A stretch of 64,000 bases of DNA, taken from assembly GCF_018977255.1 (NCBI RefSeq), contig NW_024704755.1:15872001-15936000 (forward strand), read 5' to 3'. This document shows positions 4,119 through 31,904 of this stretch, one piece after another; the stretch's first letter is position 1; the number at the start of each line of letters is the position of its first letter. The notes below the pieces were generated by a model that had not been told where the DNA came from, made no database searches, and saw only the letters and a list, made by a program, of their open reading frames with translations. This DNA is from Callorhinchus milii. Taxonomy: Eukaryota. Made by a program: the position numbers and the translations under genes.

Positions 4119-7100
4119 ATGTTGGCGAGTGTTGTGTTTCAGTGTCTGTCTCTCATGTGGATCATTCCTAAAGGTTTGTCCTTATTCAATGTCACAGTTT
4201 GCTGAAAAAGGACAAGGATAAAGTTCTTATTCTAGTTTTATCCATTTATAGAGTAAATCTCATCTCTAACTTACTCTGTGTTTATCTCTTTGTCGCAGTA
4301 CTTTTGTTTCAAAACAATGTTTGAATTTATTTCTGACAGTTGCTGACGGGACATCGATCCAAGTAACTCAACATCCCGAACACATCGCTATAAACACTGG
4401 TGAAAATGTGAAGTTCTCCTGTAACTTCCCCGACACCAAGATTATAAAAACAAACTGGTGGAAGCAGGGAGAGAGTGAATACCTGAAAATTGATCACAAG
4501 AAACAATTTGATCAGAAAAGTGCAAGAAAGACTTCTCTCGAGCTCCTGGATGTGCGCCACCAGGATTCTGGAATCTATTACTGTGCAGCGATGACTGCGG
4601 GATATACAACAGTAAATGGAAGTGGATCACATTTAACGGTATATGGTAAGTATTGTTATAAGACTGAGAACTTAACTGTTATATATAATTGATCCATCAT
4701 TTACATTCATGTAAATTAATTTAATCATTTTGGGGGGAGAATCTTAAAGCGCTTTACAAAGGCTGAGGGGCTGCCGGAGCTGAGACCGAGGTGGGAGGGG
4801 AGAGTGGCCACAAGGACAGTCAAACTGGTGTGTCTTCAGGTGGGATTTGCGAGGAGAGAGGGAAGGGCGAGAAGGATGGATTTCGGGAAGGAATTCTAAA
4901 ACTTCGGGTCAACACAGCTGAACGTTCCCTCCACATGAACGTTTCCTAATCAGACACCCAACCGATCAAACTCTTTATTATAATTTACCATCTAAAATAT
5001 ACTTGTTCTTTTTATTCCCCCCACGCCAAGCTGTACCGTATAGCCTCATAGTCGTATGCATTACACCTCAGGTGCCATTTCTCTGCCCAGTCAACTAATC
5101 TGTCTCTATCGCCCTGAAGTGGCTTACAATCTTCTAATGACTAAATGACTGAAAGTTCTTCATTGTTAGTTACTCCGTATTTTGTGAATCATGTAAACTT
5201 GGACATTGTTCCTCTTATATTACAATCCAGACCATATATAAATGTCGAATTACCATAGGTTAGTGGGAGCTGACTTGAAAAATTACACTAAAATTTGATG
5301 ATGGGTTTCATCATTCACTTCATTGCTATTGGGACGTCCTCCCGATGTGAAAAGCGCTATATCAAATGCAAGGATTATTATTATTATTATCGTGAGATAT
5401 TTCTGTACACAGAATGGACAGCCACGCACGAAAGTAAATATAAGCAATACTCTTCATAATAAATCCTGTGAAGCGACTTGAGACTTGAAAAGGCGTTACA
5501 TAAAAGATTTTTATTGCAGTGCCTCCAATTCCTCTAAAAATTTCGTACAAAGAACGTCGAGGAGATTCATCTGTGTTTCTGACTCTCGTGTGTGAAACGG
5601 CCGCGTTTTACCCGAAAAATCTCACCTTCACATGGTCTAAAAACGGCACAGAAATTACAACTGGGATACATACCACTGAACGACAGAACACTGAGGGACT
5701 GTTTGAAGCTTCCAGCTCTGTGGAGGAGACACAGTCTGTCCAGAATGGGACAGTTTATACCTGTCGGGTGTCTCACATCAGCCTCCAGACTCCAGGAATT
5801 CGCAACTACACCATCTACAAGGTTTACCTTCCTGACAAAGGTAGGAATACAACAGTCTCAATGTCAATTAGCGTTAATTGTCTTTCACAAGAATATTTCC
5901 TTCTTTTAAATCACACCGCGAACCATAGCCATAAAATTTGCTTCATGTAAAATATAAACCACTTTCACCTTTTAATGCATAACATTTGAATTGTTATGAA
6001 TGCAAAATATCACTTGCCCTTGACAATATTAACCAGTCAGGTTTAAAACCTCTAATTTACAGTATATTGTAACCAAGAATGCGAGTATGAAACGTGAATT
6101 TCCACTCAATTTCTTAATTATTAGTAGATATTATGTTCCCTCTGTTTCCCCTCAGACCTGTCTTGAATAGCGCCATTTTATTAAATAACTTTAGTAAAAT
6201 GATCTGCTCTCAGGCTTTTTACAGTGATGCTTTTGTTCAAACTCAGTTCCCTGATCCCTGTGGAGCGGCAGTGAGACAGGAAGATATCTGTGCCGATGAT
6301 GGTGCTCAGGAAACCTTGTTTCACCTTATAATGGCGCAGCACATTGGAGCGTTTTGACCCGCGATTACAGTTTGGCTGCACTTGGGAACTTTTAATAGAT
6401 GTCTCTATCTACAGCTGTCTCCCTACAAAATAACTAACATACCTGCCCCCGATCTCCTTACTGATAATAAATATATTCACCCACAAAATATTGAGTCAAA
6501 AAACACTTTGCAATACAAGTTTCTTCGAAGCACTTTGAGACACCTGCATGATGTAACAAGGCACTATATCAAATGCAAGCATTACAATTTATTATTATTC
6601 CCAAGAGGTTTCATTGTCCACAGTTTCTCTCCACAAAATAATTAACTTGCTCTCCCATCTCCCTTACTGTTCAGTAAAAATGATTGAATACTTTATTTTA
6701 AAGGGATTAAGGGATATGGGGATAAGGCAGGGTTATGGTATTAGCAGGACTTAGATTAGAAGATCAGCCATGATTTATTGCCAGGGCAGGCTCGAAGGGC
6801 CGAATGGTCTACTCCTGCTCCTTTATGTAATGTTAAACAGATAAAACATAATCCGATGGCGAAGCAGGGGACAAGTCACATGAAACATTCCGGTTTTCAT
6901 TTGTTAGACATTGTTCTTAAATGGAAAAATATAACATTGTATTTTGTCCTAAAACGCTTTTTTTCTAGAGAATTGTGTCATTACTGAAACGGTAAACCAT
7001 CGGATCACAAAGTGCAGTTTCACCTCTCATCTCCCGGTGTCCAGGCCAACAATCCCCCAAATCAACTTGTTGGCTGATTCTATGATTGTAAGGCATTATT

Positions 7101-10100
7101 GTGCAGAAATTGGCTGCCACGTTTCGGCAAAAAATACACAATCTCAACATTTGACAGTATATCATGTGAAGTGCTTTGAGGTGCCTTGACAATGTGAAAA
7201 TATGTTGTGTAAAATGCAAGGATTATTACATCATTATTATGATCTTATATTGTTTTTATGGAAGAAAAGGATCGGCACCTATATCCATTACTGATCGCTG
7301 GATGTGCAGTGGGGGTGGCTGTTTTGGTGCTTTTGGTATACTTTGGGAATCGATCCAAATTAATGAAAATGAAAGGTAAGAATTTTGTTCTGGTTAATTA
7401 TGAATGCTTGATTTTGGTACATGTAGTTGTGAAAGTGCTAATAGTCCTTTGGTAACGCAGAGAGACTGTTTCTCAAAGAAAAATCGACCTGAAAGTTTGG
7501 GGATCCAATTGTTTTTCACTCTTTTCATTCTCCATTGGAGATTCAATAAAAATTTCAGTTATTATATTTCATTAATTTTAGGGGTACACAGGAAACAGAA
7601 TGATTTGGACCATCAGAGCCAACAGGTAATATCCATCCCAGGCAGTGTTTCATACCTAACATTAACATTGATTGATAACATTGAAAAGGATTGTGTTGTT
7701 TATAATTATTTGAGGATATTTTCAAAATGTTTCTTACCTGATTGCCCGCTTCACTATGTCATTGAAATTGTATTCACACATGTAACTCAGGTAACATAAT
7801 ATACAAGCCAACCAGTCTTGAGAAAACATTCCTTTACATTAAGGTAAAAGTTGAGAGTTGCAGTTTGTGATTTACAGGAAGTGCATGGAGGAGATGCTGA
7901 GAGGGTCACTTATATCACACTGGATTTGAAAAGTTCCAATAAACTTTCAAGACCGAAACATCAGGAAGACAGGACAGTGTACGCCAAGGTACAGCTGAAA
8001 AGCATTGCATCAACGCATACACAATCAAATTATTCTAAATGTAATACATTGTGCCTCATGTGCTCCATTTTGGGCTCGAGGGTATATAGAAATAAACTAT
8101 TTCCATTGTTTAAAGGCATCAGCAAATAGAGGACATGTATAAGATTGACATAAGGAGCAAAAGGAAAGTTTAGCAGATTTTTTCATACGATGTGCGGGTT
8201 TGGTAAGGTGGTAGAAGCAGATTTGTGTGTTTCAAGACAGAATTAGATAGGTACATGATATATATGCTTAACTAGGTATCTAGTCCGATTATGCAATTTT
8301 CGCATAAAGACCGAATGAAACTAAATTCTAATTCCTTGGCTTTTATAGATCAAGCAAAAAGCAGAAAATAACAAGCAGGTATATGCTTCTTTGGAGTTTT
8401 CTGGCCCAGAGAAAGGAGGAAAACCGAAGAGAAGCAAACCAAATACAGTGTATGCTACAGTGCAGGTGAGAAACTGTGAAGGGCAATAGAGGCCATTTAC
8501 AGTGAACCAAAAACAATGATGAATTGCATTAATAGGTTCAGGACCTAACCCTAACCCACACTCAGCCGAACTGCTTTCCAATTGGGTAATTAGCTATGGC
8601 CACCTGGATGATTTCCACCCGGTCTCTGCATGCGCGTTTTGGCTGCCGCCCCACCCTGAGTCTCCCGCTCCACTCTAAATATCTCTCCTCCCACCCCACT
8701 CTATGTCTCTCCTCCCACCCCCCTCTGTGTCTCTCCTCCTAACCCCGTCTAGCCGCTACTCCCCCTCTGTCCTTCTCTCCCACTGCACTCCCCGCCTTCT
8801 CTCTCTCCTTGATCCCATCACCACCTCCCTCTGCTCCAGCCTGGGCCTCCTCTGCTGGGCACATCATGGCTCCAGGCACTGGCTATCCCAGAGCAGCCAC
8901 CCCAAGTGACCAATCATTCACTCCCTCCACACAAACCGCTTCCTTAAGGCAAACCCAACTTCGCCCTCCCTCATACGCACCCTCCCCAACTCTCCACTCA
9001 CACCACTCTCCACAATCATCTCTCCTGTACACCCAAAATCCTCTCTGCATCACTCTCTGCTCCCTCCCCTCCTTCCAGCATCTCCAAACCCACCCGATAC
9101 CCCTCGTACAACAATCATCACCACCGCCTAAAAACCCAAACCCGGCTGCTCGAGCGCAGATGGTGGAAAACTGGCCTGACAGTTTACCGCCAATTGTGGC
9201 TCGGGCATCTCCACAGCTGCCGCTGTTCTTTGACACGCGCAAAAACAGCCTTCTACTCCAACATCATCTTGGAGGCTAAACACAAACCTAAAATCCTTTT
9301 TTCCAGCACCCACTAACTCCTGCGTGCCCCTCCTCAGAAGTCCTCAATCTTCATATCAAATGCCAAGTGTGACGGAGTCATGGATTTCTTTTCATCTAAA
9401 ATACATAACATCCGCCAGGCAGCCTCATCGACCTGCCTCTTGTCACCCATCACCATGCCCTCTCTGTTCCCCTCACCCTCCCCATCATCTGCTCCTACCA
9501 CCATCCCCATCCTGTAGCTCATCCCCATCCTGTGGAGTCCTGTAGCTCAGTGGTTACAGCACTCGCTTTACAAGCGAGAAACCTGAGTTCAATTCCAGGC
9601 ACAGGGCGAAACCTTGGGCCAGTTTCCTTACTCCACACACCTAATAATAATCCCTCCAAAACCAAAAACAATGATAAAATTGATCATTTTCAATCTACGA
9701 CTGTTTGTGGGACATCGCTGTGCGCAATTGGCTGCCGCGTTTGCCCACAAATATACAGTCAATTCACTTTACAATGTGCTCTGTGAAGCGCTTTGGGACG
9801 TCCTCCCAACGTGAAAAGCGCTATATCAAATGCAGGGATTATTATTATTATTATCCTACATTCCTCCTCCCCATCTCACCCTCCTCCTTCTTACCCACCA
9901 TCACCTCCACGAAACCCACCACCTGCTGCCTCGAACCCCTTCCCATCACCTTGCTGGTCACCCAGCTCCCCTCCTCTGTCCACTACTGGCTGACGTCATC
10001 AACCAGTCCCACTCCTCCGGATCAGTCCCTGACCCCCTCAAAACTGCTGTCATCAACCCCCCACCTCAAAAATACTTCCCTAGATCCCTCAAAGCCCAAC

Positions 10101-12094
10101 CACTGCCGCCCTATTTCTAACCTGCCCTTCCTCGCAAAAGTCCTGGAACGCGTTGTTATCAATCAATTTTGTGCACACCTCCTCCCACTCCCTCTTCGAA
10201 CCGCTCCAGTCCGGTTTCTGCCCACAGTACAGACACTGCACTTGTGAAAGTCACAAACGACATCCTCTATCTGTGACCGGGGCTCCCTCTGCCTTCTTGT
10301 CCTCCTAGACCTCTCCGCCATGTTCGACACAATTGATCACGCCATCCTCCTCCACCGCCTTTCCACCGTCATCCACCTCACTGGGACCGCACTCGCCTGG
10401 TTCAAGTCCTACCTCACAAACCGCCAGCAGTACATCTCCACAAATGGCTTCTCCTCCCGCTCTCACCCAGTTACCTGCGGGGCCCCCCAGGATCCATCCT
10501 TGGCCCCTCCTCTTTCTGACTTATATGCTCCCTCTTGGGGATGTCATCCGCAGAAATGGGGTACATTTCCACATGTATGCGGATGACACCCAGCTCTATT
10601 TTTCCACCTCTCATTGCGACCCCCAGTCCCCTGATGTTCTGTCAGCTGCCCGTCAGACCTCAGGGGCTGAATGAGCGCAAATTTCCTTCAGCTGAACATT
10701 GACAAGACAGAAGCCATACTCTTTGGCTCTCATCAATGTCTAAAATCTCATGATTCTCACCTCCTCCACCTACCCAACCTCCCCATAAAATTCTCTGAAC
10801 GCATACGCAACCTAACGATCAGGTTCGACCCCCAATTATCCTTCCTCCCCCACATCCAATCCCTCACCACCACTGCTTTCTTCCACCTCCGACGCATTGC
10901 CCGTCTCCACCAATACCTCTCTCCAAAAGCCACTGAAACCCTGGTCAATGCCTTTGTTACCTGTCAGCTGGAGTATTCAAATGTCCTCCTCACTTGCCTC
11001 CCCTCCACTATCATCCATAAAATTCAGGTTATTCAAAACTCTGCCGCCTGCATTCTCACCCACACCAAACTCCGCTCCCCAATTACCCCAGTCCTCACCA
11101 GACTGCACTGGCTCCCTGTCCCAGAGAGGATCGATTTCAAGATCCTCAGCCTTGTCTTGAAAACCCCCTGCCTCTCTGACCTCCTCCCTCCTCAAAACAA
11201 TGCCTGTTGCCTTCGTTCCTCCAGGTCTGGCCTCCTCCTTGTCCCCCAAGTCCTCTGCTCTACCCTCGGCAGCAGTGCCTTCAGCCACTATGCACCGAAG
11301 CTCTAGAACTCCCTTCCTCACTCCCTTCACCTTGTCCCCTCTCTTCCTATTTTCTTTGATGAAGATCTTTCTTTTTGACCGAGTCTTTGGTCACCTTCCT
11401 CCCGCTCTTCCTGGCTTGGCCTCGGGATCCATTACTGTGAAGCTCTGAGACGCCATCTGGCGTGGAGTGCACTATATGAATCTAAGTTGTTATTGTTGTT
11501 GTTGTTGATCTTTTGATATAGCTAGAAAATTATAGAATCATAGAGCTATACAGCACATAAGGAGGCCATTCAGGCCATTGTGTCTGTCCTGACTCTTTGA
11601 AAAGTGCTGTCCAAATCAATCCTATTCCCCTGCTCTCTGCCCTAACTCTGCAAACTTGTCCTTCCCAGATAATTTTTGACTTCTCTCTTAAGAGTTGTTA
11701 GAGGCTTCCACACCTTTTCAGGCAATGCATTCCAGATCCAAACAACTCGCTGTGTGAAAAAAATTCTCCTCGCTTCCTCTCTTTTTTTTAACAACTATTT
11801 TAAATTGGTGTCCTCAGGATATTGACCCACGCACCACTGGAAATAGTTTCTCCTTGTTCACTCTATCGAGTGCCCTCAAACTTTTGAAAGCTTAAAACTG
11901 TCAGTAGTTTATCAAAGTTGCACAAAAGGATAAGCTAACTATGTTCTGAAAAATTGGCTTTACAGGGCAAGCAAGGAGTAGCTGCTAACAAGCTGACATA
12001 CGCTGCTTTAGAATTTTCTGGCTCCAAGAAACCAGGAAAACCTAAACACAGCGACAAGAATACAGAGTATGCCAAGATACGGGTGAGAAAATAG
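4119..12094 (+). CDS. IgSF receptor A: leader-V(J-like)-C1-TM-cytoplasmic tail with 3x ITIM/ITSM (SIRP/NCR3-like inhibitory receptor), 397 aa
   Basis: Exons: 4119-4173 (leader [18 protein letters not shown]), 4340-4645 (V: [24 protein letters not shown]), 5520-5840 (C1: [24 protein letters not shown]), 7265-7375 ([25 protein letters not shown]), 7582-7625, 7878-7988, 8349-8465, 11966-12094 (TAG). All introns are GT-AG with compatible phases (1,1,1,1,0,0,0); 1194 nt total. Orthology is not established. Confidence 0.85.
7030..7240 (+). mobile_element. SINE 3' fragment just upstream of the TM exon of receptor A
   Basis: aattggctgcc..gtgaagtgctttgagg..aaatgcaaggattatta tail. Confidence 0.6.
8690..11510 (+). 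mobile_element. L2-clade LINE, frameshifted ORF2 (reverse transcriptase), interrupted by a SINE; inside the last intron of receptor A
   Basis: RT motifs [50 protein letters not shown] and [15 protein letters not shown] are spread over several frames; 3' (TTG)n tail near 11490-11507. Confidence 0.9.
9532..9854 (+). mobile_element. Full-length tRNA-derived SINE (about 320 bp) inserted in L2
   Basis: Head gtggagtcctgtagctcagtgg (A box) and gagttcaattcc (B box); L2-like tail gtgaaaagcgctatatcaaatgca followed by (ATT)n. Confidence 0.9.
11530..11890 (-). mobile_element. CR1 LINE 3' end
   Basis: atagaatcatagag..cagcacataaggaggccattc is the reverse complement of the CR1 3' terminus seen at 60313-60366. 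Confidence 0.7.
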
Positions 12095-12134
12095 AAAGGA
12101 GCAATGGAGGCCACCTCGATGGAACAGGATCCAC

Positions 12135-12455
12135 ATAATAATAATAATAATAATAATAATGTTGCATTTGATATAGTGCTTCCCAAAGGACGTCCCAAAT
12201 CGCTTCACAGAACACACTGTAAAGTGAATTGACTGTATATTTGTGGGCAAAAACGGCAGCCAATCACGCACAGCAAGGTTTCACAAACAGTCGTGGATTG
12301 AAGTGACCATTTTTTTTTCTGGAGGGATGATTATCAGGCGTGTGGACTAACAAAACTTGCCCAAGATTTCCTGCTGGAAATTGAACCCTGGCCTCTCGCT
12401 TGCAAGGCCTCTCGCTTGCAAGGCCAGTGCTCTAACCACCGAGCAACAGGACTCC
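12135..12455 (-). mobile_element. tRNA-derived SINE, 40 nt after the stop codon of receptor A
   Basis: Reverse complement of the 9532-9854 element; contains a 16-bp tandem duplication at 12391-12422. Confidence 0.85.
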
Positions 12456-13609: not shown

Positions 13610-13970
13610 GTGGAGTCCTGTAGCTCAGCAGTTAGAGCACTTGCCTCGCTAATGAGAACTGGGTTCTATTCCTGGCAGGGTGAAATGTTGGGAAAGTTTC
13701 CTTACTCCACATGCCTCTTTGTTTTCTTAGCAGTAAATAAGAACCTGATTTTTAGTCGATTGACTATTCCAGGGTAATAATTCCTTCAACAAAAAGAAAT
13801 CGGTCACTTCAATCCACAACTGTTTGTGGGAAACTGCTGTGCACAAATGGCTGCCATATTTCACCCACAAAATATACAGTCAATTCACTTCACCGTGTAT
13901 TCTGTGAAGCACTTTGAGGCATCTCAAAGACATGATAAGGCTCTATATCAAATGCAAGGATTATTATTAT
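13610..13970 (+). mobile_element. tRNA-derived SINE
   Basis: Head gtggagtcctgtagctcag, shared body, (ATT)n tail. Confidence 0.85.
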
Positions 13971-16529
13971 AAATATAGGTGGTTTCGCATTACCTGTGTC
14001 ACCCATGATACAATTATTACTTCTGCTTTGGCGACAGGTGTAGGACACCGCGGTCCTGGCTGTCACTCCAGTATATTGCTGGGGAAATGCTGCAATTTTT
14101 GATGGATAAGTCTCTATGATGTCCACTCTGCCTATTCTGCATGTTAAAAATCTCATTACTTTATTCCAAAAAAGAAGCTTCTGTCGCTGTCCTGCTGAGT
14201 TGTCAATCCTCTAATGGTTGTTTGTACAATTTTGCTGTGCATAAAATTGCTGTCACGTTTGCTTACAAAATAAAGTCACTTTAATTAACAGTAATTAGTG
14301 CAGATCCTTTGTGGTTTTTCGATTCTATAGGCGCTTTAAACAGGAAAGGATTTTTTCTGCATAAGGAATATCCCCCTCTCCTACGCCCCATGTAAGGATG
14401 AGATGTTCTGGCCCAAAGCGCCAAATTGGGTACAGATAACAGTGGCTCTAACAGTATGTGACTCCAACACAAACCAGTAACAGGTTTAGGAAAGGAAACC
14501 CATGTGAGCCAGTGGAAAGGTGAAGGATATAGATGCGGTTTGAAGTTTTTAAAGTCAACGCTATATTTTGTGCTTGTAAGCGAAAAATAACATTAAAACG
14601 TGATTATTTCTTGGAAGACGTATGTTATATGGTAGGTGTGAATTGAGAGGTCACGTAACACCGCCCCCGTGTGATATTTCATGTTTAATAACCTGTTGCG
14701 GGGGCCGCACAGCTGTGAACTTGATTTTCTGTACTCAGGGCTTCTTCTACATATACAAAACCACTTGTGAGACGTACTTTTTCGCATCTCATACCCATCT
14801 GCTCAAACAGTTTTCATTTAACACAACGAACCAAACGTATAACACGTAGCTTTACAGACCATGAGGAACATTTGGAAACATGCTGACGTGCCCTGGTACA
14901 GAGAGAGCGTTTGTAAAGCAGATGAAAAGCTGAACAGAAGCAGAAATACTCCGAATTAAGAGAGCGCGGAATTAGCAGAACAGAGAGAAACGCAGCGCTG
15001 CACACAAAAGCCAAAGTGAAATAACCATTGATAATATGTTATTAAAATGTACAATTAAATACTCTGAAACCTTTTCTTGTAACATCCTTCATGTTGTCAC
15101 CTATTTATTCGCATCCTCTACTGAACACGCGTTGTTGGTTACGGCTCTTTGGGTATCAGCAAATACATCGCAAACTGACCATTCATTGCGGGTTAGCCCA
15201 GGCTCCAAATATGGTATATTCCGCAGAACAAAACATCTAATTATTATCTGTTAAGTTAAGTTATTATCTGAAATCTTCCGCTCTGGGCTTGACATAGAAC
15301 CCGTTTCTTTCCCACAGACATCGGCACACGTTCACTTTCCACCATTAACTGTTGTTTGGGTCATTGCGGGGAAACTGCCTTCAGCTCTGATGTCAAATGC
15401 AGCGCAGCCCAGTGTCACCTGAACTAATAACAGCCTCTGATCACAAGCCTTGGCTGGAATTGAGCCTGGAATCTTCTCCTGTTTTACTTGTTCCCGACTG
15501 GGAATTTTCAACCTGAGGAGACATTGCAATATGTTTTGCCTTCTTGCATAGTTTTACAATGATTATTGATTTATAAAAGCCTTTAACCAGAAGATTGATT
15601 CTATAATTTAAACATATTTCTGGCTGTGCAGCGTTCCTGACTTATTTTAATGTGTTAGGAATAGGAGTTGGGGTATATTTGCAATCAAATAATAACACTC
15701 TAAGCATACCGCAGAAACTTGAAACGTAACTATAGCGCCTGACACTTTTCTTACAACGACATAGATTGTTTTCGTCATTGGATTCAAGTTCCGTTCACTG
15801 AATCTCCTTCGTCACTGAAGCACAGTACATTGTTTACAGTCATTTGGAGTTTGTTATTGTATTTGTACTGCATTTAACTCCTGCCCATCGAGACCTCTGC
15901 TCGCTTCGCCCTTATCTTTTCTGGGGGCAGCCTGACTAACACATCACATATGAATTTCCAAACGAGAATCGAAAATATCCATGCTTCAGAGGATCCAAAC
16001 TAAAAATTCAACACATGATCCTACCAACACATGGAAATTTCTCTGTGTTCAAGTGAATGCAACAACAACAACTTGGATTTATGTAGCGCCCTCCACGCCG
16101 GACGGCGTCTCAGACCGCTTCACAGTAACGGATCCTGGGGCTGAGCCAGAGGGAGGGGGAGGAAGGTGACCAAAGGCACGGTCGAAATGCACACCCTCTG
16201 CATGGATGCATGGATCCTGCCTACCTCATTCCAGAGAGCATAAGTATGTGTTGGCAAGAGCCAAGGTCTGGGAACCCAGTAGTGTGCATTGGAATATTGC
16301 TTGAGTTTAATCAACTAACCCTACATAGCTTGTCATTAAAACTCTGTCTGATAAGGTTCTTCACTGCTTGTCCAATTTGGACCACCCACCCATTAGGATT
16401 TTGGCTCATGGGTATAAAAAGAGTTGCAGAAAGAATCCCTGTCCCTAATGACATGTCTGCCTCTTTATGTCCTATTGATGAGCCGATATCAACACCAGTG
16501 TCTTAATACTTGCATTTATACAGTACCCT

Positions 16530-17500
16530 TCACATGGGGTAGTTTCTTGGAGTGCTTAAAAGTCGCAGAGCCTGATACTGAGTCAGGCGAGGGAGGAGGT
16601 AAGCCATGATCTGAAAGGGGGGAAGGAGGAGACAAGGTGGAAGAATTGAGTGAGAGAGTACAAAAGTTTTGGGGTATAAGTAGCTGAAAGCATGATCACC
16701 AATGGTGGAGCAGACGGAACAAGGGACAAGCAGGAGGCCAGATCAAGCAGTTTGGAGGCAGTGGATGATGGAGTGGGGAGTAAGCAGGGTGGAGAGGTAG
16801 GGATTGAGGTGCCAGGGCACAAAGTGATTTGTCAATGATTGTGAGGATCTTGAAGTTGATCCGTTCTGTGATATGGAGCTAATGGAGCCTACCAAGGACT
16901 GGTGTGATGGGGCTACAAACGTTAGTGCGGGTGAACAGTGGAGGTTTGAATTAGTTGGATTTTGTGGATAGTGCAGCTGGGGAAACTGGCAATGAATTGG
17001 AATAGTCGAAATAGGAGGTGATGATTGTGTGAATAAGGGTTTTGGCTGTATTTGGTGTGAGGTATGGTTGGAGGCAGGCAATGTGATGGAGGTGGAGAAA
17101 AGTGATCCTGGTCAGAGATAGCTGGGGATTGATCCTGCCGTCTAGGTTACGAACAAGTTCAGTAATTCTTAGGGAAAGGCCAATGAGGTCTGAGCCACAT
17201 GAGAGAAGAGAATGATGGGAGCTAAGGAGTATGGCTTCCATCTTGTTGACATTCAGCTGCAATAATTTTGTTCTCATGCAGGCATTGTTGTCTGACAAAA
17301 AAGAACATCAGTACTCCTGGAGTCACAGCTGGAGGATGAGAAGTAGATTTGGGTGTCATTCGCATACATGTGGAAGTTGACCCCATGTCTGGGGATGATA
17401 TTGCCTAAAGGAGGCAGGCAAATGAGAAAAAGAAGGGGTCCAAGAATGGAGACTTGGGGTATGCCACAGGTGACTGGGAGGGTCGTGAGGAAATCACATT
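16530..17500 (-). mobile_element. Degenerate L2 LINE fragment
   Basis: Minus-strand LLQLNVNKMEAILL, LVRNL, TAKTLIHT..FDYSNSL. Confidence 0.8.
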
Positions 17501-18339
17501 TGAAGAAAACCTGAAGGAATTAAACCATTTTGGGATTCTAACCATTTGATAATGTACTAAATCATTTGAAGAACAAGGAACATTACATCTCACAAAGTCC
17601 TTCCACTGTGCCCATTAAGTAATTCCAGGTCATTGCTTGTTGGGTTGCATTAAAAGCAAATATTTTTGGAAGTTTCAGTTATTGTTGTGGAGAATATCTG
17701 CATTTCTCAAAGTCATATCTGGAATTTTTTGTTGATTATCCTGTTGGTCATATGCTTAAATTAATGAAACAAATAAATAACAGAGGAATGTAAAATTCCC
17801 TTACAATGATGTATATATTGTTGTTATAATGATGAATATTTAATATTTTGAATAGTTTAGATTGATCTGCTGACAATTTGTAAAAGGATTGATTTGGTGA
17901 AAAACCTGCAGCGACACCTTATGGTATTATAAGGGACAGGAGGGTTCCAGAGACACATGAAACTTACATTAGTTCCATCAATATCTACCAATAGGAAACA
18001 AAGAGATTATTTAGTAAGTATATCGTCAGGTAATTAAAGAAGTCATTCAAATTACACCTTTCATAGGATTTATTGTGTATTTTATGAGCTAATGTGGCAG
18101 CCAATATTCGCACTGTTTGCTGCACTTGGTGACGTTTCCTCACTAAGTGACACATATAAGTGACAATAATTCAACAGTGTATACACACAACTGTCATGTT
18201 AATAAGTTATTTTGTTATCTTAGTGCATTTAACATCAGCTATTCTCCTTTAGGAAAAATACAGATTTCCATAGAGAGGCAAGCAGATTGTATTGATCAGA
18301 TCCTTTTTATAAGGTCTCGTTTGCAATAACTGTAAGGAA

Positions 18340-19066
18340 CCAATCTTCTCCAATGCTATTCCTGCCCTCACCCCTTCTGCTCAGCTAATTCGAGTTTGCT
18401 GTGTGTGCATCCTTACCCTGCTCTGCACCACCAAATAAGGCTGAGCCTTCAGTTCCTTCCCTGTACTTGCTGCAACATCCTCCCCACCACCAACAATCTC
18501 TCACACTGTCTTTAAATCCCGCCTCAAATCCTACCTCTTCAAATGTGCCCATGGCCACCTCCTACCTTCCCCACACCACGCCCACCCCTCCCCCGCCATC
18601 CCATTCCCCCTTGATTAGCATCTAATCCCGTTCATTCCAATCCTATCCTTCAGAGGATCCAGTTCAAGATCCTGGTCATCACCTACAAAGCCCTCCATGG
18701 CCTTGCCCCACTACCTCTGCAACCTCCTAAGCCCCTACCAACCCGCCCACTCCCTTCGCTCAGCTGGCTCCGACCTGATCCATGTCCCTCGAGCCACTCA
18801 CCCCACCATTGGCAAGAGAGCCTTCAGCCACTCTGCCCCAACCTCTGGAATTCCATTCCCCAATCACTCCACTTCACCCCCTCCTTCAAGTCCTGCCTCA
18901 AGACTCGCCACTTCAACCATGCCATTGGTGAGCCCCCTTCCCCTCCCCTCCCTTCTCCGTCCCTGACCCCAGCTCGGGTCTGAAATGCAGTTCACTGTCC
19001 AGCGCCTTAGGACATCCTCCCGACATGAAAGGTGCTATACAAATGTAATCTTGTTGCTGTTGTTGT
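18340..19066 (+). mobile_element. L2 LINE 3' fragment
   Basis: ggatccagttcaagatcc and LRS..DL.HVP..THPTIG.RAFS-like segment; tail ..aaatgtaatcttgttgctgttg. Confidence 0.8.
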
Positions 19067-19317
19067 TTAATGCACTCTGAGGCAATACCCTACATAAACA
19101 GCGTTATATAAATGCACATTGCTGTTGTTGTTGAGTAATGCCAGTAGACTGTCACCATTTACTGCTCTATTGACTGTCTATTGGTGCTGAAAACACATTT
19201 CTGCATGGAAAAGAGATTTCTCCCATATTCCTAGACAACAATCCCCTAAATAATATTGGTCATTACTTCATAAGCTATTATGGTACGTGGCTGTATGTCA
19301 ACTGGCTGACTTGTTTG

Positions 19318-20700
19318 CAACAAAACAACAACAAAATTACATTTATAGAGCGCCTTTCACATTGGGAAGATATCCCAAAGCGCTGAATGGTCAGGTGTTG
19401 GGGCCCAAGCATGGAGGAGGGGTGGTGAGAAGTGGGAAGATTACCAAGGGCACGATCGACGAGAAGGGTCTTGAGACCGGCCTTGAAGGAGGTGAGGGAG
19501 GAAGTGAGGCGAAGGGACTGTAGGGTGGAGTTCCAGAGTGTGGGGGCAGAGAGGCTGAAAGCCCGGCCACCAATGGTAGGGTGGGTCGGGTGGGAGACAT
19601 GGAGCAGGCCGGGGCCTACTGAACGGAGGGAGCGGGCAGGTTGGTAGAGAGTCAGCAGATCAGAGAGGTAGGAGGGAGCAAGGCCATGGATGACATTGAA
19701 AGTGAGGATGAGGATCTTGAACTCAATCCTCTGGGGGAATGGGGAGCCAGTGGAGTCGGGCGAAGGTGGGAGTGATGGGGTCATGGAGCCTGGTGCGCAA
19801 AACTGCATGAGCTGCAGAGTTTTGGATGATCTGCAGCTTGTGAAGGGAAGAGCTTCGAAGGCCGATGAGGAGGGAGTTCCCTGTAATTGAGCCTTGATGT
19901 GACAAATGTGTGGATGAGGGTTTCAGCAGCCTGCGGAGTGAGGCAGTGGCGGAGTCTGGCAATGTTGCAGAAGTGGTGGTAGGTAGTGTGGTTCATGGCA
20001 TGGATGTGGGGGAGAAAGGACAGTTCAGGGTCAAACAAGACACCCAGGTTCCTGACTGGCTTAGTGAGGTTGAGTGTGCAGAGGCTGATGCTGTCAGTGC
20101 CCGAGATGTGGAGGCCCTGACGTGAGCCATTCAGGAGGGCCTCGGTCTTGCTGACGTTGAGTTGGAGAAAGTTGTCCTTCGTCCAGGACTTGATGTCGGA
20201 CAGGCAGTCGGTCAGGACACCAGTAGTTCTGCAGTTGAGACTGTCATCCACATACAGATGGAAATTTACCCCATGTCTCCGGCCTTTGGGACATCCTCCC
20301 CACGTGAAAAGCACTCTATAAATGTAATTTTGTTGTTGTTGTTGAAGGGGGGAGCATGTAGAGTGTGAAGAGGAGGGACTGAGGACAGAGCCCTGAAGGT
20401 CACTGCATGAGATGGTGCAGAGGCTGGAGGAGAAGACGTTCGCTGCAACGAAGTGGAGGCAGTGTTAAAGGTAGGACCTGAACAAGTCAAGGACAGAACC
20501 TTGAAGGTTGAGGTGGGCGGAGAGGTGGTGAAGGAGGAATGAATGGTCCACGGTGTCAAAGATGGCGGCGAGGACGAGGAGGCAGAGGGAGACCTGATCA
20601 CACATAGTCAGGATGTCATTTATGATCTTGACCAGAGCAGTTTCCGATTGGAGGGGTTCATGGAGGGAATGGGAGAAGAGGTCATTGCTAACAGTCATTG
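19318..20700 (-). mobile_element. L2 LINE ORF2 3' region, frameshifted
   Basis: FDTVDHSFLLHHL, FHLYVDDS, FLQLNVSKTEALL, RIEFKILILTF, GRAFSLSAPTLWN; tail at about 19320-19390. Confidence 0.9.
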
Positions 20701-21484: not shown

Positions 21485-24145
21485 ATGACAAGTGTGGTCT
21501 TTCTGTACCTGTTTGCCCTGGAGATTATTTCTACAGGTATGTGTTCATTCTAAACCCCGCTCCTTTAAATTAGTTACCATATAAAACCCTACTCACTCAC
21601 CTTCCTTCTTCTCCTTGCACGAAAGACGATCTAAGAAATCAGTGTTTGTCTTTATTTTCTGACAGTTTCTGGCGATTCTTCGATCGAAGTGACTCAAATC
21701 CCCGACCATGTGGTTGTCATCAGAGGGACAAACGTTACCTTCCGCTGTATCTTTCCCTTCTCACAGGACGGTTCAGGAGTGGATGTGCAGTGGGATAAGG
21801 AGGGTGAGAGCGGGTATTTGGATACAAAGGAGGATAACAGGAAACTATTTGGTGTAAAAACTAAAGGAAGCGCCTTCTTCCAGTTCTTGAATGTGAATTT
21901 ACTGGACTCTGGAGTCTATCGCTGTGCAGTGGTCCGTCAGGAATCAATAATTGGAACAGGACCTGGATCGCGATTAACTGTGTGCGGTGAGTGTTTCACT
22001 TCCATTCTCCACCACATTCCCAATTTGCAGATATTATACAGCATATAATAAACCGGGATGAATGTTTCAAAGGTGTTTATACTGTGCATTTTTGTCGATT
22101 GTCAGCCTTAATATTAATTTCCCGGGGAAACATAAACATGAGTAAGAGCAGCAATCACAGAAAAATCATCAATATACTTTAGGAAATGCGTTTATAATTG
22201 GCATCAGCGCACATCAGCGCGTTGAAATGTATTACATTTGGTTTTATTCCACAATTTATATATATTGTGTTTTAAAATATGTTCAGTGCAAGTCAATGTT
22301 TAATTTCGAACTCTGCACAACTGAAACACAAAACTCAAGATACCACTAAACCAAATTACGATGTTTTATTAATCGTATTCAATGGGGCATTATTTCTTCC
22401 ATGATTTATTTCAGACTACAGCGACCGACACTGTGGGTGTAAATACAGTAATAGAACAAAATGTGATGTATTACATTATGACATGATGGAGCCTTTTGAG
22501 GACTGATAGAATGTAGTTCCTCATCAATTGCTGTATGAGATGTCTTTTCTCTTCGTTTTCAATCTTTAAAGTGCAAAGCTCTCGCTTTTTTATTATTGTT
22601 GTTGCATGCTGCCTACATAATTACTGAACCATCTAGTGAAAAAAAGATAGTCCTAGTGGTACNAAAAATAGTCTTTCATTTATAAAGAGAATGAGAACCA
22701 GCACAACTTGCTTTACTGAAGGCCAGACATTTCTAAAGCTGTGTGCATCTTTGGAATTATTAATAAAAGGGAGGTAGTGTGAATGATATGACTTAAACTT
22801 TATTTTTAAAATACAAAGTTAACAAACCTGAACATAAGCGGAAGTCGGTATGAGTTGGGAGTTGCAAGGAATTGTACACCAATCAAAATAAAATATATTC
22901 CTCCATCTGAGCCCAAATAACGAGAATCTGCACCATTATCTGTTCTGCAGTTCCCCCAACTCCACTGAAGATCTTTTCCAGGGCTCCCGAAAGAAGTTCG
23001 TCTGCATCGTTTTCTCTGGTGTGTGAAACGGCCGCCTTTTACCCCAAAGATTTCACCCTCACCTGGTATAGAAATGCCATCGAAATTATTCCATTGCTGG
23101 GTACAAGTGTGACAAAGATCGTCACTGCTGGACAACCGAATCCGGAGGGACTGTATAAAGTCTCCAGCTCTATGGAAGAGACACAGGTTGTCCAGATCGG
23201 GACTGTTTACACCTGTTTGATATCTCACTTAAGCCTCCGGACTTCAGCCATCGCCACCCACACCGTCACCCAAACTGCTCTGGGTAGGATGCCAACAATC
23301 TTACTGTCTGTTAGGCAGGTGCCAAATATGTTCCACATTGAAGAAGTACTACGGCACGGGTTTCCAGTAACTTTTGTTGAGACTAATTCGTAATTTAACT
23401 GGTAAATTATCTTCCTAAAAGTGGTCATGAATTTCAGGGGAAAAAAACGCAAATATTTTAGCCAACGCTGCTATAAAAAGCGATGGAATGAATATCATCA
23501 TATTTGTAATCAGTATTTTTTAAATCAAGTTACGAGAAATGCAAACTATTTCCTATGTAAGATGATGTTGGCCACGTTTCTGTTTACTTTCTTCCACGTT
23601 TGATTGCAGATTGTAGCTATTTTGAAGTATTTGTTGGTCCTATCCTCTCTGTTTATTGCTCTGCAGGGAATGGGAGTACATCGGTTTATTTCTTCATCTC
23701 TGGCTGTGTGGGGAGCGGATTTACAGTTCTAGTGCTGGCGATACTCATTGGAAAGGTAAGGCAATTAAACACCAACTATTTACATTTACATATCGCCTTT
23801 CCCATCTCAAAAGGCTTCGTACAACTGACGGGAGGAGGGGGGGAGTGGGGGGACGGGTGGAATCCCATCCGAAGAGATAACGCTTAAAGCTATTTTCGAA
23901 GACTGGGAGAGAGAAGAAGAGGACTTCAGTAGCGACACACTTTATGTTTTGCATTTTAGAACATTTTGAATCAAGTGCAAAAAGAGACTGCAGGTACGCA
24001 AAGGCCATATGTATACAACAAAATAATAACACAAGGGGAGACCCTTTTCATGCCCAGCTTTTCTTGTGCACTTATGCGAAAATATGTTCCTTTACAGACT
24101 GTGCAGACATCAGCGGCAATGTCAGGGCAGCGTGAGCTCCAATAA
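21485..24145 (+). CDS. IgSF receptor B: leader-V(J-like)-C1-TM-short tail without Tyr, 280 aa
   Basis: Exons: 21485-21536 (leader MTSVVFLYLFALEIIST), 21666-21986 (V: FRC..QWDK..DSGVYRC..GTGPGSRLTVC), 22951-23283 (C1: [23 protein letters not shown]), 23667-23755 (TM VYFFISGCVGSGFTVLVLAILIGK), 24098-24145 (TVQTSAAMSGQRELQ*). GT-AG, in frame, 843 nt. The last exon is the least certain. Confidence 0.8.
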
Positions 24146-25469: not shown

Positions 25470-25765
25470 ACGCCTCAAAGCTCTTCACGGAATCTGCTGT
25501 CAATTTAATTGACTGTATGTTTTGTGGGCGAAACGTATTTAATGTATAGAAAATAAATGCATAGAAATAAAAAATAAGTTAATTCATTATATTGCTTTAC
25601 ATTTGTAGATTTTGTTTTGTTTCACGCCTCAAAGCTCTTCACGGAATCTGCTGTCAATTTAATTGACTGTATGTTTTGTGGGCGAAACGTGTGTAATGTA
25701 TAGAAAATAAATGCATAGAAATAAAAAATAAGTTAATTCATTATATTGCTTTACATTTGTAGATT
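25470..25765. repeat. 142-bp near-perfect tandem direct duplication (period 154)
   Basis: 25470-25611 matches 25624-25765 apart from about 3 substitutions. Confidence 0.9.
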
Positions 25766-27838: not shown

Positions 27839-30800
27839 ATGTTTGTAAAAATTGTACTTCAGTATTTTCCTGCACTGGGCATCATTTGCACAGGTATTTA
27901 GCTCTTTCTATCTCTCGTTTTAATTTGTTTCCCTATTCGTGACATAGGGAAAATGCTGGAAATTGGATTAATAAAAGAAGAGTAATTTGGTTGGTGTTGA
28001 TTCCATGGTTGAATAATTTCCCTCGCATAACATTTTTGTTTCTATATATAATTTATATTTATATTTTCTCTGACAGTTGCCGCCAATGCTCGCCTCACAG
28101 TGACCCAAACCCCTGAAAGCTCTATTGCGATCGTAGCTGCCAACGTTACCTTCAGGTGCATTTTCTCCCTTTCTGATAATTCTGCTGTGACTGTTGAGTG
28201 GTGGAAACTGGGCGAGAATGAGTTTCTCCAGCCGGGCTCAGACAGCAGGAAACGGTTCCTTACCCAGAGTGGGGAAGCTTCCCTTCAGCTCCTGAGTGTC
28301 AACCTCCAGGACTCAGCAGCCTATTACTGTGGAGTGAGATATCAAGGAAGAGGAATGACAAATGGAACTGGATCATCACTGGTTGTTCATGGTAAGTACA
28401 TGGGTGCTTTGTACTAGACATATTTTTAATTGCATAGGAATAACTAGAGGAATTTTGAATGATTTTCTTTGCTTCAAATAAAAAAGGAACTAAAAAAATT
28501 GTTTTTAAAATAATGTAATACAGTGCCTGGTCGCATCCGAAACACATTACAATATTACAATGAATTCACACTGTATTCTGCACACAGCAAGGTCATACAG
28601 AGAGAATTAGGTAAATTACTTTTTTAACCTAAAGAATTGTTCATAAAGGTCTTAGGAAAATAGGAGCTCTTTTCAAGTACCCAAATCTTTAAAGTCCATC
28701 TGAAGAGAGGTTGTAGAAAAACCTAATTTTAATACCTCCCCCAGTATTGCACTTGGCGTGTCAGTCTGATCTGTGAATCCATAATCTTCTATCCAGAATT
28801 TAGAGTGCAATCAACTGGGTAGAACTGGCACCCACATTACACATTCATTATAATGAAGATTAGCAACGTAACATGAATTATAAGCACAAGATAGATTACA
28901 TCACCTCTGAAACGTGATTCTATTTTAATCCTTATTCTTGGTCTTATTTGGCTGGTGAGAAGTTATATATGACCTATGTTCACTCACGCAAGACAAATAG
29001 TGGAATAATTAAAAAATGTGATCAGGTTTTGCGACAGCCCCAATAAACATGTAAAAACATAAAAGTTGTTCTGACTTTATCTGACGTTGTGTCATTCCAG
29101 CTGCTGTTAAAGTTAAATAGAATTCAGTCTCTCCAGAGCTGAAGATATTTCAGACTAAAGTGCCTGTGTCTCTTAGGCCTGGCTGCATTTATAATTCCTC
29201 AGTGTCTCTTTGTCTCAGTGTCTCAGTGTCAATTCCACGAATGACCAGTGAGAAACTCCATCTGGATACACAGATTTACACAGAATAGCATAATTGTACA
29301 GAATTACACTATTTATGGAACATTTCAATGACCAGAATTTGGCAAATTGTTGAATTCAGTCTTATCTTTGAGGCTGTTATCTGTAGTTCTTAAAATAACT
29401 TACACAAAAAGGTGGCTTCAAAATCAAAGATGTATTAAAGAATTTGCTAAATTCTGTATGTTCAATAATGCCACATTAGTGTAGAAGATCTAGATCCAGG
29501 CTAAATTACACCCTCCTGAAAAGTATCTTGAGTTGAGGGTAAACGGGGAGTCCTTGGAATTGAACTGGTTCAAATGTGACATGTTTGGCAACTGAATGTC
29601 AGACCAGAGCCAGACAGATTCGCAGGACTCCTGGGCATTGCTGTTGAAAAACAATTGTCCCCGCCCTGACCCCAGCTCAGGTTTGAAATGCTGTACACTG
29701 TCTAGTGCCTTGGGACGTCCTCCCGACGTGAAAGACGCTATACAAATGTAATCTTGCTGTTGTTAACTCTGCAAGTCAAAGCCCTAACAGATAGGATGGT
29801 CCTCGCAGGGGGAAAGCTTGCCCGACAGTTCTATCAATGGTAAGCTATGCGATTTTAGCTGGTTAGGCTCCAGCAGTTACCTCAACCACATTCTGGGGTA
29901 CCCAAATCTTGGCTCTTGTCAATTAGCGCCTAAGTTCCAGAAATAGGTGAGCAGGGTGCATCCCTGTGGCACAGTTTGTATCCTCTAAAGCATGGTGATT
30001 GGTCTCCACTTGGGTCAGAAATCTGTCTGCCCCCCAAAAAAAAATTATCCTGCAATCAAAATAACAACGAGAAGCAGTCTATTCCGCGGTTACATTTCCT
30101 GTTCATTGATGGAATTTACATTGAATTTGTTTCATGAGTAACAACTGAAAAGTGGCTCTAGTGATAAATTTGTGCTGTTTTCCCCTGACATATGCTTCAT
30201 AGTTCTTTGATATTCACAAGCGCAGAAATATGCATGGAGATTTTTTTGATCTCTTATATAACAATTAAAGTGTGAAAGTTGAAATTTTCAAAGATTAGGT
30301 ATCAATTTTGATGAAACATAATTAATTACAATAGTTCAGAGGGAAGAATGAACCTCTCTCTAACCACAATGTATTGCAAATCATGGTTGAGCAATTTGAT
30401 CTTGTTTTTGGTCAGCCAGGTGTCTGACACATGCAGAAACCCATGATCATGATAAAGAGAATCCACCCAAACTGATATTTCTAGGTATCTCACCTTCACA
30501 TGGAAATTCCAGAGATAGATTGTTGGAATGGAATACACACTCTCTCCCTAGAGAGACACATCCTGCTTAACTAATTCCAGAAAGTATTAGGTGCAAGTTG
30601 GCAAGAGCCAAGACTTGGGGACCTCAGAGTGTGCTTTAGGGTAACAGCTGGAGTCTAACCAGCTAAAACTATATAGCCTGCCATTAATATCGCTGTCTGG
30701 CAAACTTCCCGCAACTTGTCCAGATAGCACCACCCTACTCGTTGGGGATTTGCCTTGCAGAGCTAACAGGAGGATTCTTTGCCCTAATGATTGGTGTGAT

Positions 30801-31904
30801 TTTCCAAGTCCTCCCAAGAGCTAGGTTGGCAGTGCTATGATCAGCAGTGCCCTGGAGTACTGCAGATCCACTTTGCTCAGGAACCGGATAAGCAACACCC
30901 AAACTGATATTTCTAGGTATCTCACCTACACATGGAAATTCCAGAGATAGATTGTTGGAATGGGATACACACTCTCTCCCTAGAGAGACACATCCTGCTT
31001 AACTAATTCCAGAAAGTATTAGGTGCAAGTTCATTGCCAAACATGTCACCTTGGAGCTAGTTCAGCTCCAAGGAGACCCCAGTTACATCCCCCTCCCCCA
31101 AGGAGGATAGGAGGGAAGGAATGGTTACAGCAGAAATTAATAAAGTACATTTCAATTACAAAGTCTTCAATTTATTACATCACTAATTCCTTCTCTAATC
31201 TGTCTTTCCACAGCTCCCCCGATGCCTCCTTGGATAGTCTCCACAGTGTCTGATGGGAACTCGACCACTTCTCTGACTCTAGTTTGTGAAACGGATGGGT
31301 TTTACCCAGAGGATATCATTGTCACTTGGTATAAAGATGATAAGAACGTTTTCACTGTAAATACAAGAAAGCAGCTTTGGAGAGATGGGAGAGGTTATAA
31401 AGCTTTGAGCTCCTTGGAAGAGACACAGCCTGTGCAGAGCGGGGCTGTTTACACCTGTCTGGTATCTCACCTAAGCCTCAAGACGCCAATCATTGCTATT
31501 TACTCTGTTTCTGGTTCCTATCCAGGTATACTTATTTTATCCTTCTAAATCATGTCTGCTGATAACTTATTTTCACTATTTCTATGTGACCACCACCCCA
31601 ACCCCCACCACCCCACCCTGTCCATATCAACAGAACAGAATTAACCATCATATAACGTTCCTGTTTTGTAACATATCTGAGCTATTCGACACCACGTGTG
31701 CTGTGCCATCATCATTCCTCCGAGAAAATGACGTATTTTATTTATTTGTAAACACTACATAGGTTATATATCGTTAGTACTTATTTTGCAGCTGCTGATC
31801 TCAGGATGCCGGTGGCTATGATTCCTCGGTTAATTCTGTGTTTATTGTTGGTGCTGGTGTTGACAGTTATCATTGTGGATTATCATAAAATCAACTCTAT
31901 TTAA
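27839..31904 (+). CDS. IgSF receptor C: leader-V(J-like)-C1-TM with Arg, 8-aa tail (activating type), 264 aa
   Basis: Exons: 27839-27893 (leader MFVKIVLQYFPALGIICT), 28077-28391 (V: FRC..EWWK..DSAAYYC..NGTGSSLVVH), 31214-31525 (C1: CETDGFYP..TWYK..YTCLVSHLSL), 31792-31904 (AADLRMPVAMIPRLILCLLLVLVLTVIIVDYHKINSI*). All introns are phase 1 GT-AG; 795 nt. A GTAAG donor at 31907 implies a further non-coding exon. Confidence 0.85.
29767..30762. repeat. Unclassified repeat of about 160 bp present as a diverged inverted pair
   Basis: 29767-29920 aligns to the reverse complement of 30601-30762 (roughly three-quarters identity by eye); a partial third copy lies near 37889-37945. Confidence 0.7.
30464..31031. 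repeat. 136-bp direct repeats flanking a 296-bp insert (intron of receptor C)
   Basis: 30464-30599 and 30896-31031 differ at about 2 positions. Confidence 0.9.

Follow-up and report, generated by a model that had tools for sequence, protein, structure and literature searches.

Three tandem elephant shark genes as probable members of a cartilaginous-fish family of VJ-C1 receptors with inhibitory and activating forms

A 64,000-nucleotide stretch of the genome of the elephant shark Callorhinchus milii (assembly GCF_018977255.1, contig NW_024704755.1, positions 15,872,001 to 15,936,000; hereafter the window) carries three genes in tandem on the plus strand, designated A (4119-12094), B (21485-23755 or beyond), and C (27839-31904). 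Each codes for a leader, an immunoglobulin (Ig) variable (V) domain with a built-in joining (J)-like strand, one C1-set constant domain, and a transmembrane (TM) segment. The three are probably members of a large cartilaginous-fish multigene family of type I receptors built on this ectodomain, in which TM and tail modules are exchangeable, with A an inhibitory member, C an activating member, and B a non-signalling or tail-less one.

The leader-V-C1-TM plan of three co-oriented genes with phase 1 introns was first put forward in a sequence-only reading of the window, and exon borders and Pfam matches agree with it throughout. All borders follow the AG/…/GT rule, the introns between leader and V, V and C1, and C1 and TM are in phase 1, the V and C1 exon lengths are divisible by 3, and the leader is interrupted one base beyond codon 17 or 18. 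Pfam assigns the C1-set domain with E=1e-14 (A), 1e-7 (B), and 2.5e-14 (C), and the V-set domain with E=1e-9 to 3e-7, values well outside what chance would give. The relatedness of the domains claimed in that reading is also evident, pairwise identities among the three genes being 41-44% for V and 45-53% for C1. Each gene has one C1 exon, and tblastn detected no extra C1 exon within any of them. The J-like G strand (xGxGSxLxV) sits in the V exon of all three genes; separate V and J segments are absent, the V exon ending at a normal donor (…HLTVYG/gtaagt). Because the J-like strand lies inside the V exon and this exon splices straight to C1, no rearrangement is involved, as had been proposed.

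The inhibitory assignment of gene A comes from its 3' exons. A sequence reading places the split leader plus one nucleotide at 4119-4173 (phase 1, donor G/gtttgt), followed by the V domain with its in-exon J-like strand (4340-4645, 306 nucleotides, phase 1-1; Pfam), for which an AlphaFold2 model reaches a pLDDT of 89, and by the C1-set domain (5520-5840, 321 nucleotides, phase 1-1; PF07654, E=1.1e-14). Exon 4 (7265-7375) codes for a stalk, an uncharged TM segment, and a basic stop-transfer sequence, and exon 5 (7582-7625) is a short cytoplasmic exon. Exon 6 (7878-7988) encodes the immunoreceptor tyrosine-based inhibitory motif (ITIM) VTYITL and TVYAK(I), which resembles an immunoreceptor tyrosine-based switch motif (ITSM), the two Tyr residues lying 23 residues apart; exon 7 (8349-8465) encodes QVYASL, a non-canonical ITIM, and the ITSM TVYATV; and exon 8 (11966-12094) encodes the ITIM LTYAAL and the ITSM TEYAKI, then VRK and a TAG stop codon at 12092-12094. 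Exons 6-8 are mutually homologous, each pairing one ITIM-like with one ITSM-like Tyr, and the tail assembled from the DNA thus carries six Tyr motifs (VTYITL, TVYAKI, QVYASL, TVYATV, LTYAAL, and TEYAKI), which together with the uncharged TM segment is what the sequence-only reading had described. The last Tyr motif of paralogue P0020 likewise continues with Val (VQVGAN…), as in exon 8. A search of the PDB with the gene A tail returned no match.

The TM-to-tail junctions of gene A agree exactly with those of a near-identical RefSeq model, XP_007904055.1 (P0018), which differs from gene A by a few substitutions; the exon 4 junction is identical in P0018, and those of exon 5 recur in both P0018 and the paralogue P0019. 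P0018 is itself chimeric, joining ITIM exons of an upstream member and a repeat-like segment (3453-3569, plus strand) to gene A, and it omits most of the gene A C1 exon. Thirty-nine amino acids of P0018, derived from the spurious repeat-like exon, match window positions 3453-3569 exactly, in accord with the cartilaginous fish host surmised before the source, C. milii, was known. Related copies of the repeat-like segment occur at 16722-16799 and 60710-60787, and the 3.5-kb intron 7, which precedes exon 8, holds debris of long and short interspersed elements (LINEs and SINEs).

Gene C has the opposite kind of membrane end. Its split leader (MFVKIVLQYFPALGIICT plus one nucleotide) is read from the sequence at 27839-27893, and Pfam recognizes the V domain (28077-28391; …TNGTGSSLVVH) and the C1-set domain (31214-31525; E=2.5e-14). 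An AlphaFold model of the V-C1 pair has a pLDDT of 90 and a pTM of 0.81, and the V exon is 97% identical in nucleotide sequence to that of the C. milii paralogue P0001. Exon 4 (31792-31904) supplies a TM segment with an Arg near its outer face (MIPRLILCLLLVLVLTVIIV), a tail, and a stop codon; the whole membrane end reads PVAMIPRLILCLLLVLVLTVIIV for the TM segment, followed by the 8-amino-acid tail DYHKINSI and the stop; the TM Arg and the tail length agree with the sequence-only reading. The tail has no recognised signalling motif of its own. A TM motif, [IVL][PHY][RQ][FLS][IV]L…II[VMAF][DE]H, is common to gene C and to members from sharks, rays, and other chondrichthyans, and the activating TM module is kept between chimaera and sharks. 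The 2.8-kb V-C1 intron of gene C contains a direct repeat (30464-30768 and 30896-31031), whereas the corresponding intron of a paralogue in locus L001 is only about 1 kb long.

Gene B is the least complete of the three. Its leader (MTSVVFLYLFALEIIST plus one nucleotide; sequence reading) lies at 21485-21536, its V domain (…GTGPGSRLTVC; Pfam) at 21666-21986, its C1-set domain, with a longer C-D region in common with the C. milii paralogue P0021, at 22951-23283, and its uncharged TM segment (VYFFISGCVGSGFTVLVLAILIGK) at 23667-23755. The TM exon closes with a strong donor (AAG/gtaagg) at 23755 or, alternatively, reads through to a stop codon at 23885-23887, which would add 44 amino acids with one Tyr (NTNYLHL). 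The homologous reading of the paralogues extends beyond the donor point of gene B exon 4 (…IIGKRCQLKKKNG), and a tblastn search with the tails of eight relatives revealed no tail or ITIM exon between 23.8 and 27.8 kb. Of the two features earlier ascribed to this membrane end, the uncharged TM segment stands; the Tyr-free tail found no confirmation, the tblastn search yielding no tail exon and the read-through form carrying a Tyr. An unpaired Cys at the V/C1 junction (…RLTVC/VPP, 21984-21986) is present in gene B and in P0019, P0020, P0021, P0025, and P0026, and not in genes A and C; some shark members instead carry a Cys in the connecting peptide (…VPNCNS…). These residues hint that parts of the family may form disulfide-linked dimers.

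On a maximum-likelihood tree built from 77 ectodomains, a 31-member clade (support 100/99) of inhibitory and unclassified forms from chimaera and elasmobranchs includes A and B, C belongs to another clade, of 21 members (92/90), that also holds the shark activating forms, and the activating label requires at least four changes on the tree. The simplest reading of these sequences would be that old ectodomain lineages have swapped TM and tail exons, an exchange that happens in other receptor families with activating and inhibitory forms. The opposite signalling types of the tails noted earlier (six Tyr motifs in A as against a TM Arg and an 8-amino-acid tail in C) are upheld, whereas the term paired, in the sense used for SIRP and KIR, has to be given up, as A/B and C belong to different well-supported clades, each with shark sequences. 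SIRP and KIR pairs have nearly identical ectodomains; with A/B and C only 41-53% identical and in different old clades, they are not a matched pair.

Nor do the three genes form a compact system, as had been supposed; the trio represents one section of an array of co-oriented genes that spans at least 350 kb. Co-oriented relatives occupy MU249845.1 at 15.21-15.57 Mb in the C. milii reference, with up to four V-C1 exon pairs in one 39-kb locus and at least three in another. A further member must adjoin the window upstream, since P0018 starts with the ITIM exons of another member. The NCBI model of P0021 (489 amino acids) contains two V and two C1 domains, reading through two adjacent tandem genes, an observation associated with the array locus at MU249845.1:15,247,272-15,286,562 (L002). 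Gene models across the C. milii array are unreliable, and the size of the family has probably been under-counted.

The family extends to other chondrichthyans, with members in sharks, skates, rays, and chimaera. Three word-based protein searches returned chondrichthyan proteins only, and a profile search was run on 1.84 billion representative proteins, in which about 100 of the best 150 clusters proved to be family members when classed by local domain hidden Markov models (HMMs). All 18 family proteins that were looked up are chondrichthyan, from sharks, skates and rays (Amblyraja, Mobula, Narcine), and chimaera. Among the sources named or looked up, the family is restricted to cartilaginous fish, and RefSeq or UniProt predicts family genes in every chondrichthyan whose matches were so covered. 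A rough motif classifier applied to the 81 ectodomain-bearing entries among the retrieved proteins assigned about 33 to ITIM-type tails and at least 8 to the conserved basic-TM/short-tail module, with several other short tails; V-only isoforms produced by skipping of the C1 exon are predicted in several relatives. The automatic names given to these proteins clash, ranging over tapasin-related-like, SIRP/PTPNS1-like, Ig lambda-like, CD276, NCR3-like, and NCR3LG1-like.

The exon structures, domains, motifs, array organisation, and taxonomic spread of the family are observed; its coupling to phosphatases and adaptors, its expressing cells, and its ligands are inferred, the coupling from established immunoreceptor biology. 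Upon ligand binding, Src-family kinases would phosphorylate the three ITIM/ITSM pairs of gene A, which would then attract tandem-SH2 phosphatases of the SHP-1/SHP-2 type. In gene C, the Arg located in the outer part of the TM segment would pair with the Asp of an adaptor bearing an immunoreceptor tyrosine-based activation motif (FcR-gamma, CD3-zeta, or DAP12 type), leading to activation. Gene B might act as a non-signalling or decoy receptor like SIRP-gamma or as a partner chain, or might be a decaying member that lost its tail exons. Several points weigh against this division of labour or its details. At an identity of only 41-47%, A/B and C probably would not share a ligand. P0001, the NCBI model of the gene C paralogue, is without a TM exon, so that the TM exon of gene C rests on its sequence and on homology with shark proteins. 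The 3' end of gene B appears to have the two alternatives described above, the donor at 23755 or read-through. Finally, ITIM/ITSM tail modules of the gene A pattern are also present in Siglecs and CEACAMs, and the likeness of the gene A tail to that of SIRP-alpha may accordingly be modular rather than orthologous.

How the family relates to known receptors was assessed by scoring local family HMMs, domain by domain, against references verified on PDB chains. In whole-ectodomain, V-only, and C1-only PDB profile searches, the summing of scores over domains let antibodies and multi-Ig proteins dominate. With the V HMM, a turtle multi-V receptor (57 bits) and a Mobula multi-V protein (41 bits) ranked above human NKp30 (3pv6_B; 37.3 bits across the full domain), followed by Ig lambda V (21 bits), bat SIRP-alpha V (15.5 bits; 15.5-16 for bat SIRP-alpha/beta V), and B7H6 V (11 bits). 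The C1 HMM ordered its references differently, with B7H6 C1 (53.8 bits) and Ig lambda C (53.5) at the top, then a Pogona SIRP-like C1 (49.8), SIRP-alpha d3 (48.5), UrIg2 C1 (47.4), Ig kappa C (44.9), TCR-beta C (43.1), HLA alpha-3 (37), and beta-2-microglobulin (31), and the tail HMM gave 32 bits on the bat SIRP-alpha tail. A C1 tree, which includes only 8 family rows and whose weak deep nodes offer no more than a hint, recovers the family C1 domains as monophyletic (93/99) and joins them weakly to B7H6 and SIRP C1 (76/76). Foldseek comparisons of the V model gave vNAR, T-cell receptor (TCR) V, and CD79b as the best matches and did not separate NKp30 from the others, and the V-C1 model matched Ig light chains by E-value, yet with a TMq of only ~0.45. 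Judged by its sequences, the family is a mosaic that combines a VJ domain like that of NKp30, a C1 domain of the type seen in B7H6, SIRP, and light chains, and a tail resembling that of SIRP-alpha, and it lacks at least one defining feature of each of the named families.

Genomic position bears on these comparisons. White shark member P0012 lies at CM029971.1:103,767,155-103,772,571, and from the accession offset and matching gene coordinates we infer that CM029971.1 equals NC_054485.1, white shark chromosome 19. This is the chromosome of the major histocompatibility complex (MHC), on which five NCR3 genes lie beside AIF1 at 101.9-102.3 Mb; C2/Bf, SKIV2L, and NELFE extend up to 103.61 Mb; a run of unnamed LOC genes includes LOC121291302 at 103.672-103.869 Mb on the plus strand; and ATF6B and UrIg are at 104.27 and 108.5 Mb, respectively (Verissimo et al. 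2023, supplement). P0012 sits in the class III part of the MHC between NELFE and ATF6B, ~1.5 Mb from the NCR3-labelled genes. In the catshark, member P0005 maps to LR744038.1:80.85 Mb, within LOC119975899 (unnamed) of NC_052158.1; this sequence is chromosome 13, the MHC chromosome of that species (Verissimo et al. 2023, table). One member is thus on the MHC chromosome in each of these two sharks, the white shark placement depending on the accession equality just given.

Resemblances to the SIRP family are considerable. SIRP (2wng) likewise has a V domain with a J-like strand and, after it, a C1-set domain, and when the extended V-C1 unit as predicted is superposed on SIRP-alpha d1-d2, the TMq is 0.76 and the root-mean-square deviation 4.0 Å, making 2wng the best whole-ectodomain superposition. 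SIRP-alpha enters the global profile search at E=5e-37 by way of its C1 domain (d3), TM segment, and tail; its ITIM/ITSM pairs are similar in sequence and spacing (ITYADL…TEYASI vs LTYAAL…TEYAKI in gene A, with 24 residues between Tyr residues in bat SIRP-alpha vs 23 in gene A), and the inhibitory, basic-TM, and non-signalling members of the trio mirror SIRP alpha, beta, and gamma. Many members bear the NCBI names 'tyrosine-protein phosphatase non-receptor type substrate 1-like' or 'SIRP beta-1-like'. Together with the C1 and tail scores above, these data might be taken to mean that the genes are cartilaginous-fish SIRP orthologues (alpha-, beta-, and gamma-like) with one C1 domain fewer than in mammals, which have two; we consider this distinctly unlikely. 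The family V HMM prefers human NKp30 to SIRP V by a wide margin (37.3 vs 15.5 bits), a poor likeness that speaks against a SIRP-type V domain, and the C1 HMM scores B7H6 and Ig lambda no lower than SIRP. The basic TM residue is an outer-face Arg in gene C and a mid-TM Lys in SIRP-beta, and the inhibitory and activating ectodomains of the window genes are only ~42-47% identical. Location may also count against SIRP orthology: a family member is on the MHC chromosome in each of two sharks, the white shark member lying between NELFE and ATF6B and not beside homologues of human 20p13 genes, and the window neighbours are a gene of the glutathione S-transferase (GST) family and one of the Sec6 family. 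No SIRP-locus marker was found in the small flanks examined of the window genes or of the white shark member.

A less improbable alternative, though still one we consider unlikely, is that these genes are the shark NCR3 (NKp30) family of the Flajnik/Ohta laboratory, already described, which would have kept an ancestral C1 domain together with inhibitory and activating forms. NKp30 has a non-rearranging VJ-type V domain in one exon, the top V score among the single-V references tested, and an activating form with a TM Arg; a VxQxPE…C.F… pattern and a G(N)GT.LVV G strand, an N-glycosylated GxG strand in NKp30, are common to both. The V-only isoform P0040 carries the NCBI name 'NCR3-like', the predicted C1-skipped isoforms would yield V-only products in several species, and the white shark member shares the MHC class III region with the five NCR3-labelled genes. 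Yet mammalian NKp30 is without a C1 domain and without ITIM forms, whereas genes A, B, and C all carry a C1 exon, and the reverse search, with NKp30 as query, prefers a different Mobula multi-V protein (36 bits) to the family members (14-24 bits). The published white shark table leaves the LOCs that cover the family unnamed and gives the NCR3 label to other LOCs next to AIF1, and two papers of the Flajnik/Ohta laboratory call NCR3 'VJ' and UrIg the novel VJ-C1 gene.

UrIg and UrIg2 (9dmx) in turn resemble the window genes in possessing a split leader and a non-rearranging VJ exon followed by C1-set exons, in being confined to cartilaginous fish, and, for UrIg, in lying on the same white shark chromosome. 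They differ in having at least three C1 domains after VJ, as compared with the single C1 exon of the window genes (PMC12227049). UrIg has several C domains, is antibody-like, and is made mainly in the liver, UrIg2 has 9-11 C domains, of which the first three are paralogous to the N-terminal C domains of UrIg, and neither is described there as forming a multigene array of ITIM and basic-TM members (PMC12227049).

B7H6 (NCR3LG1; 3pv6_A) shares the V-C1-TM plan and gives the top C1 score, with the common pattern C.V.H.SL.TP, three members carry the NCBI name 'NCR3 ligand 1-like', and the C1 tree offers the weak grouping with B7H6 and SIRP C1 given above. That the genes encode B7-family ligands of the B7H6 type, and not receptors, is nonetheless very improbable. 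The B7H6 V domain is unrelated at 11 bits and without a J-like strand, whereas the family V domain has the J-like GxG strand and an antigen-receptor-like fold, as the Foldseek matches indicate; moreover, B7H6 is a ligand and not an ITIM-bearing or adaptor-coupled receptor, and the multiple ITIM/ITSM pairs and the basic-TM module of the family are receptor features. The remaining candidate identities were rejected on domain content. The N-terminal tapasin domain of tapasin and TAPBPR is absent, V and C1 being the only domains present; in an Ig light chain, J would be a separate segment and a TM segment would be lacking; and NITR, a bony fish family with V and I-type domains, and PRARP are excluded by a second domain that is C1, the C1-set being the only set-specific Pfam model to fit it. 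The earlier suggestion that a single V domain with a single C1 domain matches neither mammalian SIRP nor NKp30 nor NITR is borne out by these comparisons.

A further proposal concerns origin: the family may be what is left, in membrane-bound form, of the pre-RAG precursor of antigen receptors, distinct from UrIg/UrIg2 and from V-only NKp30 and so far unrecognised as such. We regard this as doubtful. It is suggested by the activating members, which keep the plan of a TCR or B-cell receptor chain (split leader, VJ, one C1, connecting peptide, basic TM residue, and very short tail), and by the position of the family on the MHC chromosome in two elasmobranchs, inside class III in the white shark.

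The rest of the window holds the two downstream genes mentioned above, both on the minus strand and both identified with Pfam, and abundant repeats. When Pfam was run on ten non-repeat open reading frames (ORFs) elsewhere in the window, only a weak GST N-terminal exon and a Sec6 exon could be named. The GST 5' exons, at 45678-46031 and 46696-46950 on the minus strand (MADSMVVFWGSGSPPCWRVMIALEEK… and …LPTFRHGDVVLNESYGVCIYLE; GST_N weak, E=5e-4), presumably resemble the fish rho class, and they flank the start of a masked or gap region at 46142-49116. Beside them, 45455-46010 is GC-rich, purine/pyrimidine-skewed, low-complexity sequence, Gly/Arg/Glu-rich on one strand and Pro-rich on the other, which is probably simple-repeat or CpG-island-like and not coding. 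The exon of the Sec6/EXOC3 family lies at 57916-58194 on the minus strand (PF06046, E=4.6e-9, profile positions 419-480). A SINE family of ~320 bp has 11-15 copies in the window, including those at 9531-9868, 12136-12455, 13610-13977, and 35575-36232 and others at 42917-43237, 57532-57896, 59932-60280, and 61332-61663, and copies of it at the C. milii reference loci show ~78-95% identity (mostly 82-94%). ARAGORN calls of tRNA-Ala and tRNA-Val on five SINE heads denote those heads and not tRNA genes. Decayed LINE-like ORFs occur at 8800-11450 (plus strand), at 16500-20700 (minus strand) between genes A and B, and at 59200-59820 (plus strand), and only one piece has a weak, sub-threshold RVT_1 match (E=4e-4). 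The first of these fills most of intron 7 of gene A and accounts for a strong C-rich skew at 8-12 kb.

None of the full texts searched, which did not include the shark NCR3 paper (Kinlein 2021), Flajnik 2012, or Ohta 2019, gives an account of a chondrichthyan V-C1 family whose members are of both inhibitory and activating types; a prior description is somewhat unlikely but by no means far-fetched. RefSeq and UniProt already contain predictions of these genes, and since inhibitory/activating receptor families are well known, nothing here is categorically new. Even so, a VJ-type V domain joined to a C1-set domain is rare outside Ig, TCR, and SIRP, and database names such as tapasin-related, Ig lambda-like, CD276, and NCR3LG1-like are misleading for these genes. 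Non-rearranging VJ-C1 genes near the MHC are targets in tracing the gene into which the RAG transposon moved, and the present family, if confirmed and MHC-linked, would join NKp30 and UrIg/UrIg2 as candidate relatives of a third kind. It would likewise mean that inhibitory/activating families with exchangeable TM and tail modules already existed in the ancestor shared by all living cartilaginous fish, and it would provide concrete candidates for natural killer- or myeloid-type receptors in animals for which almost none are known.

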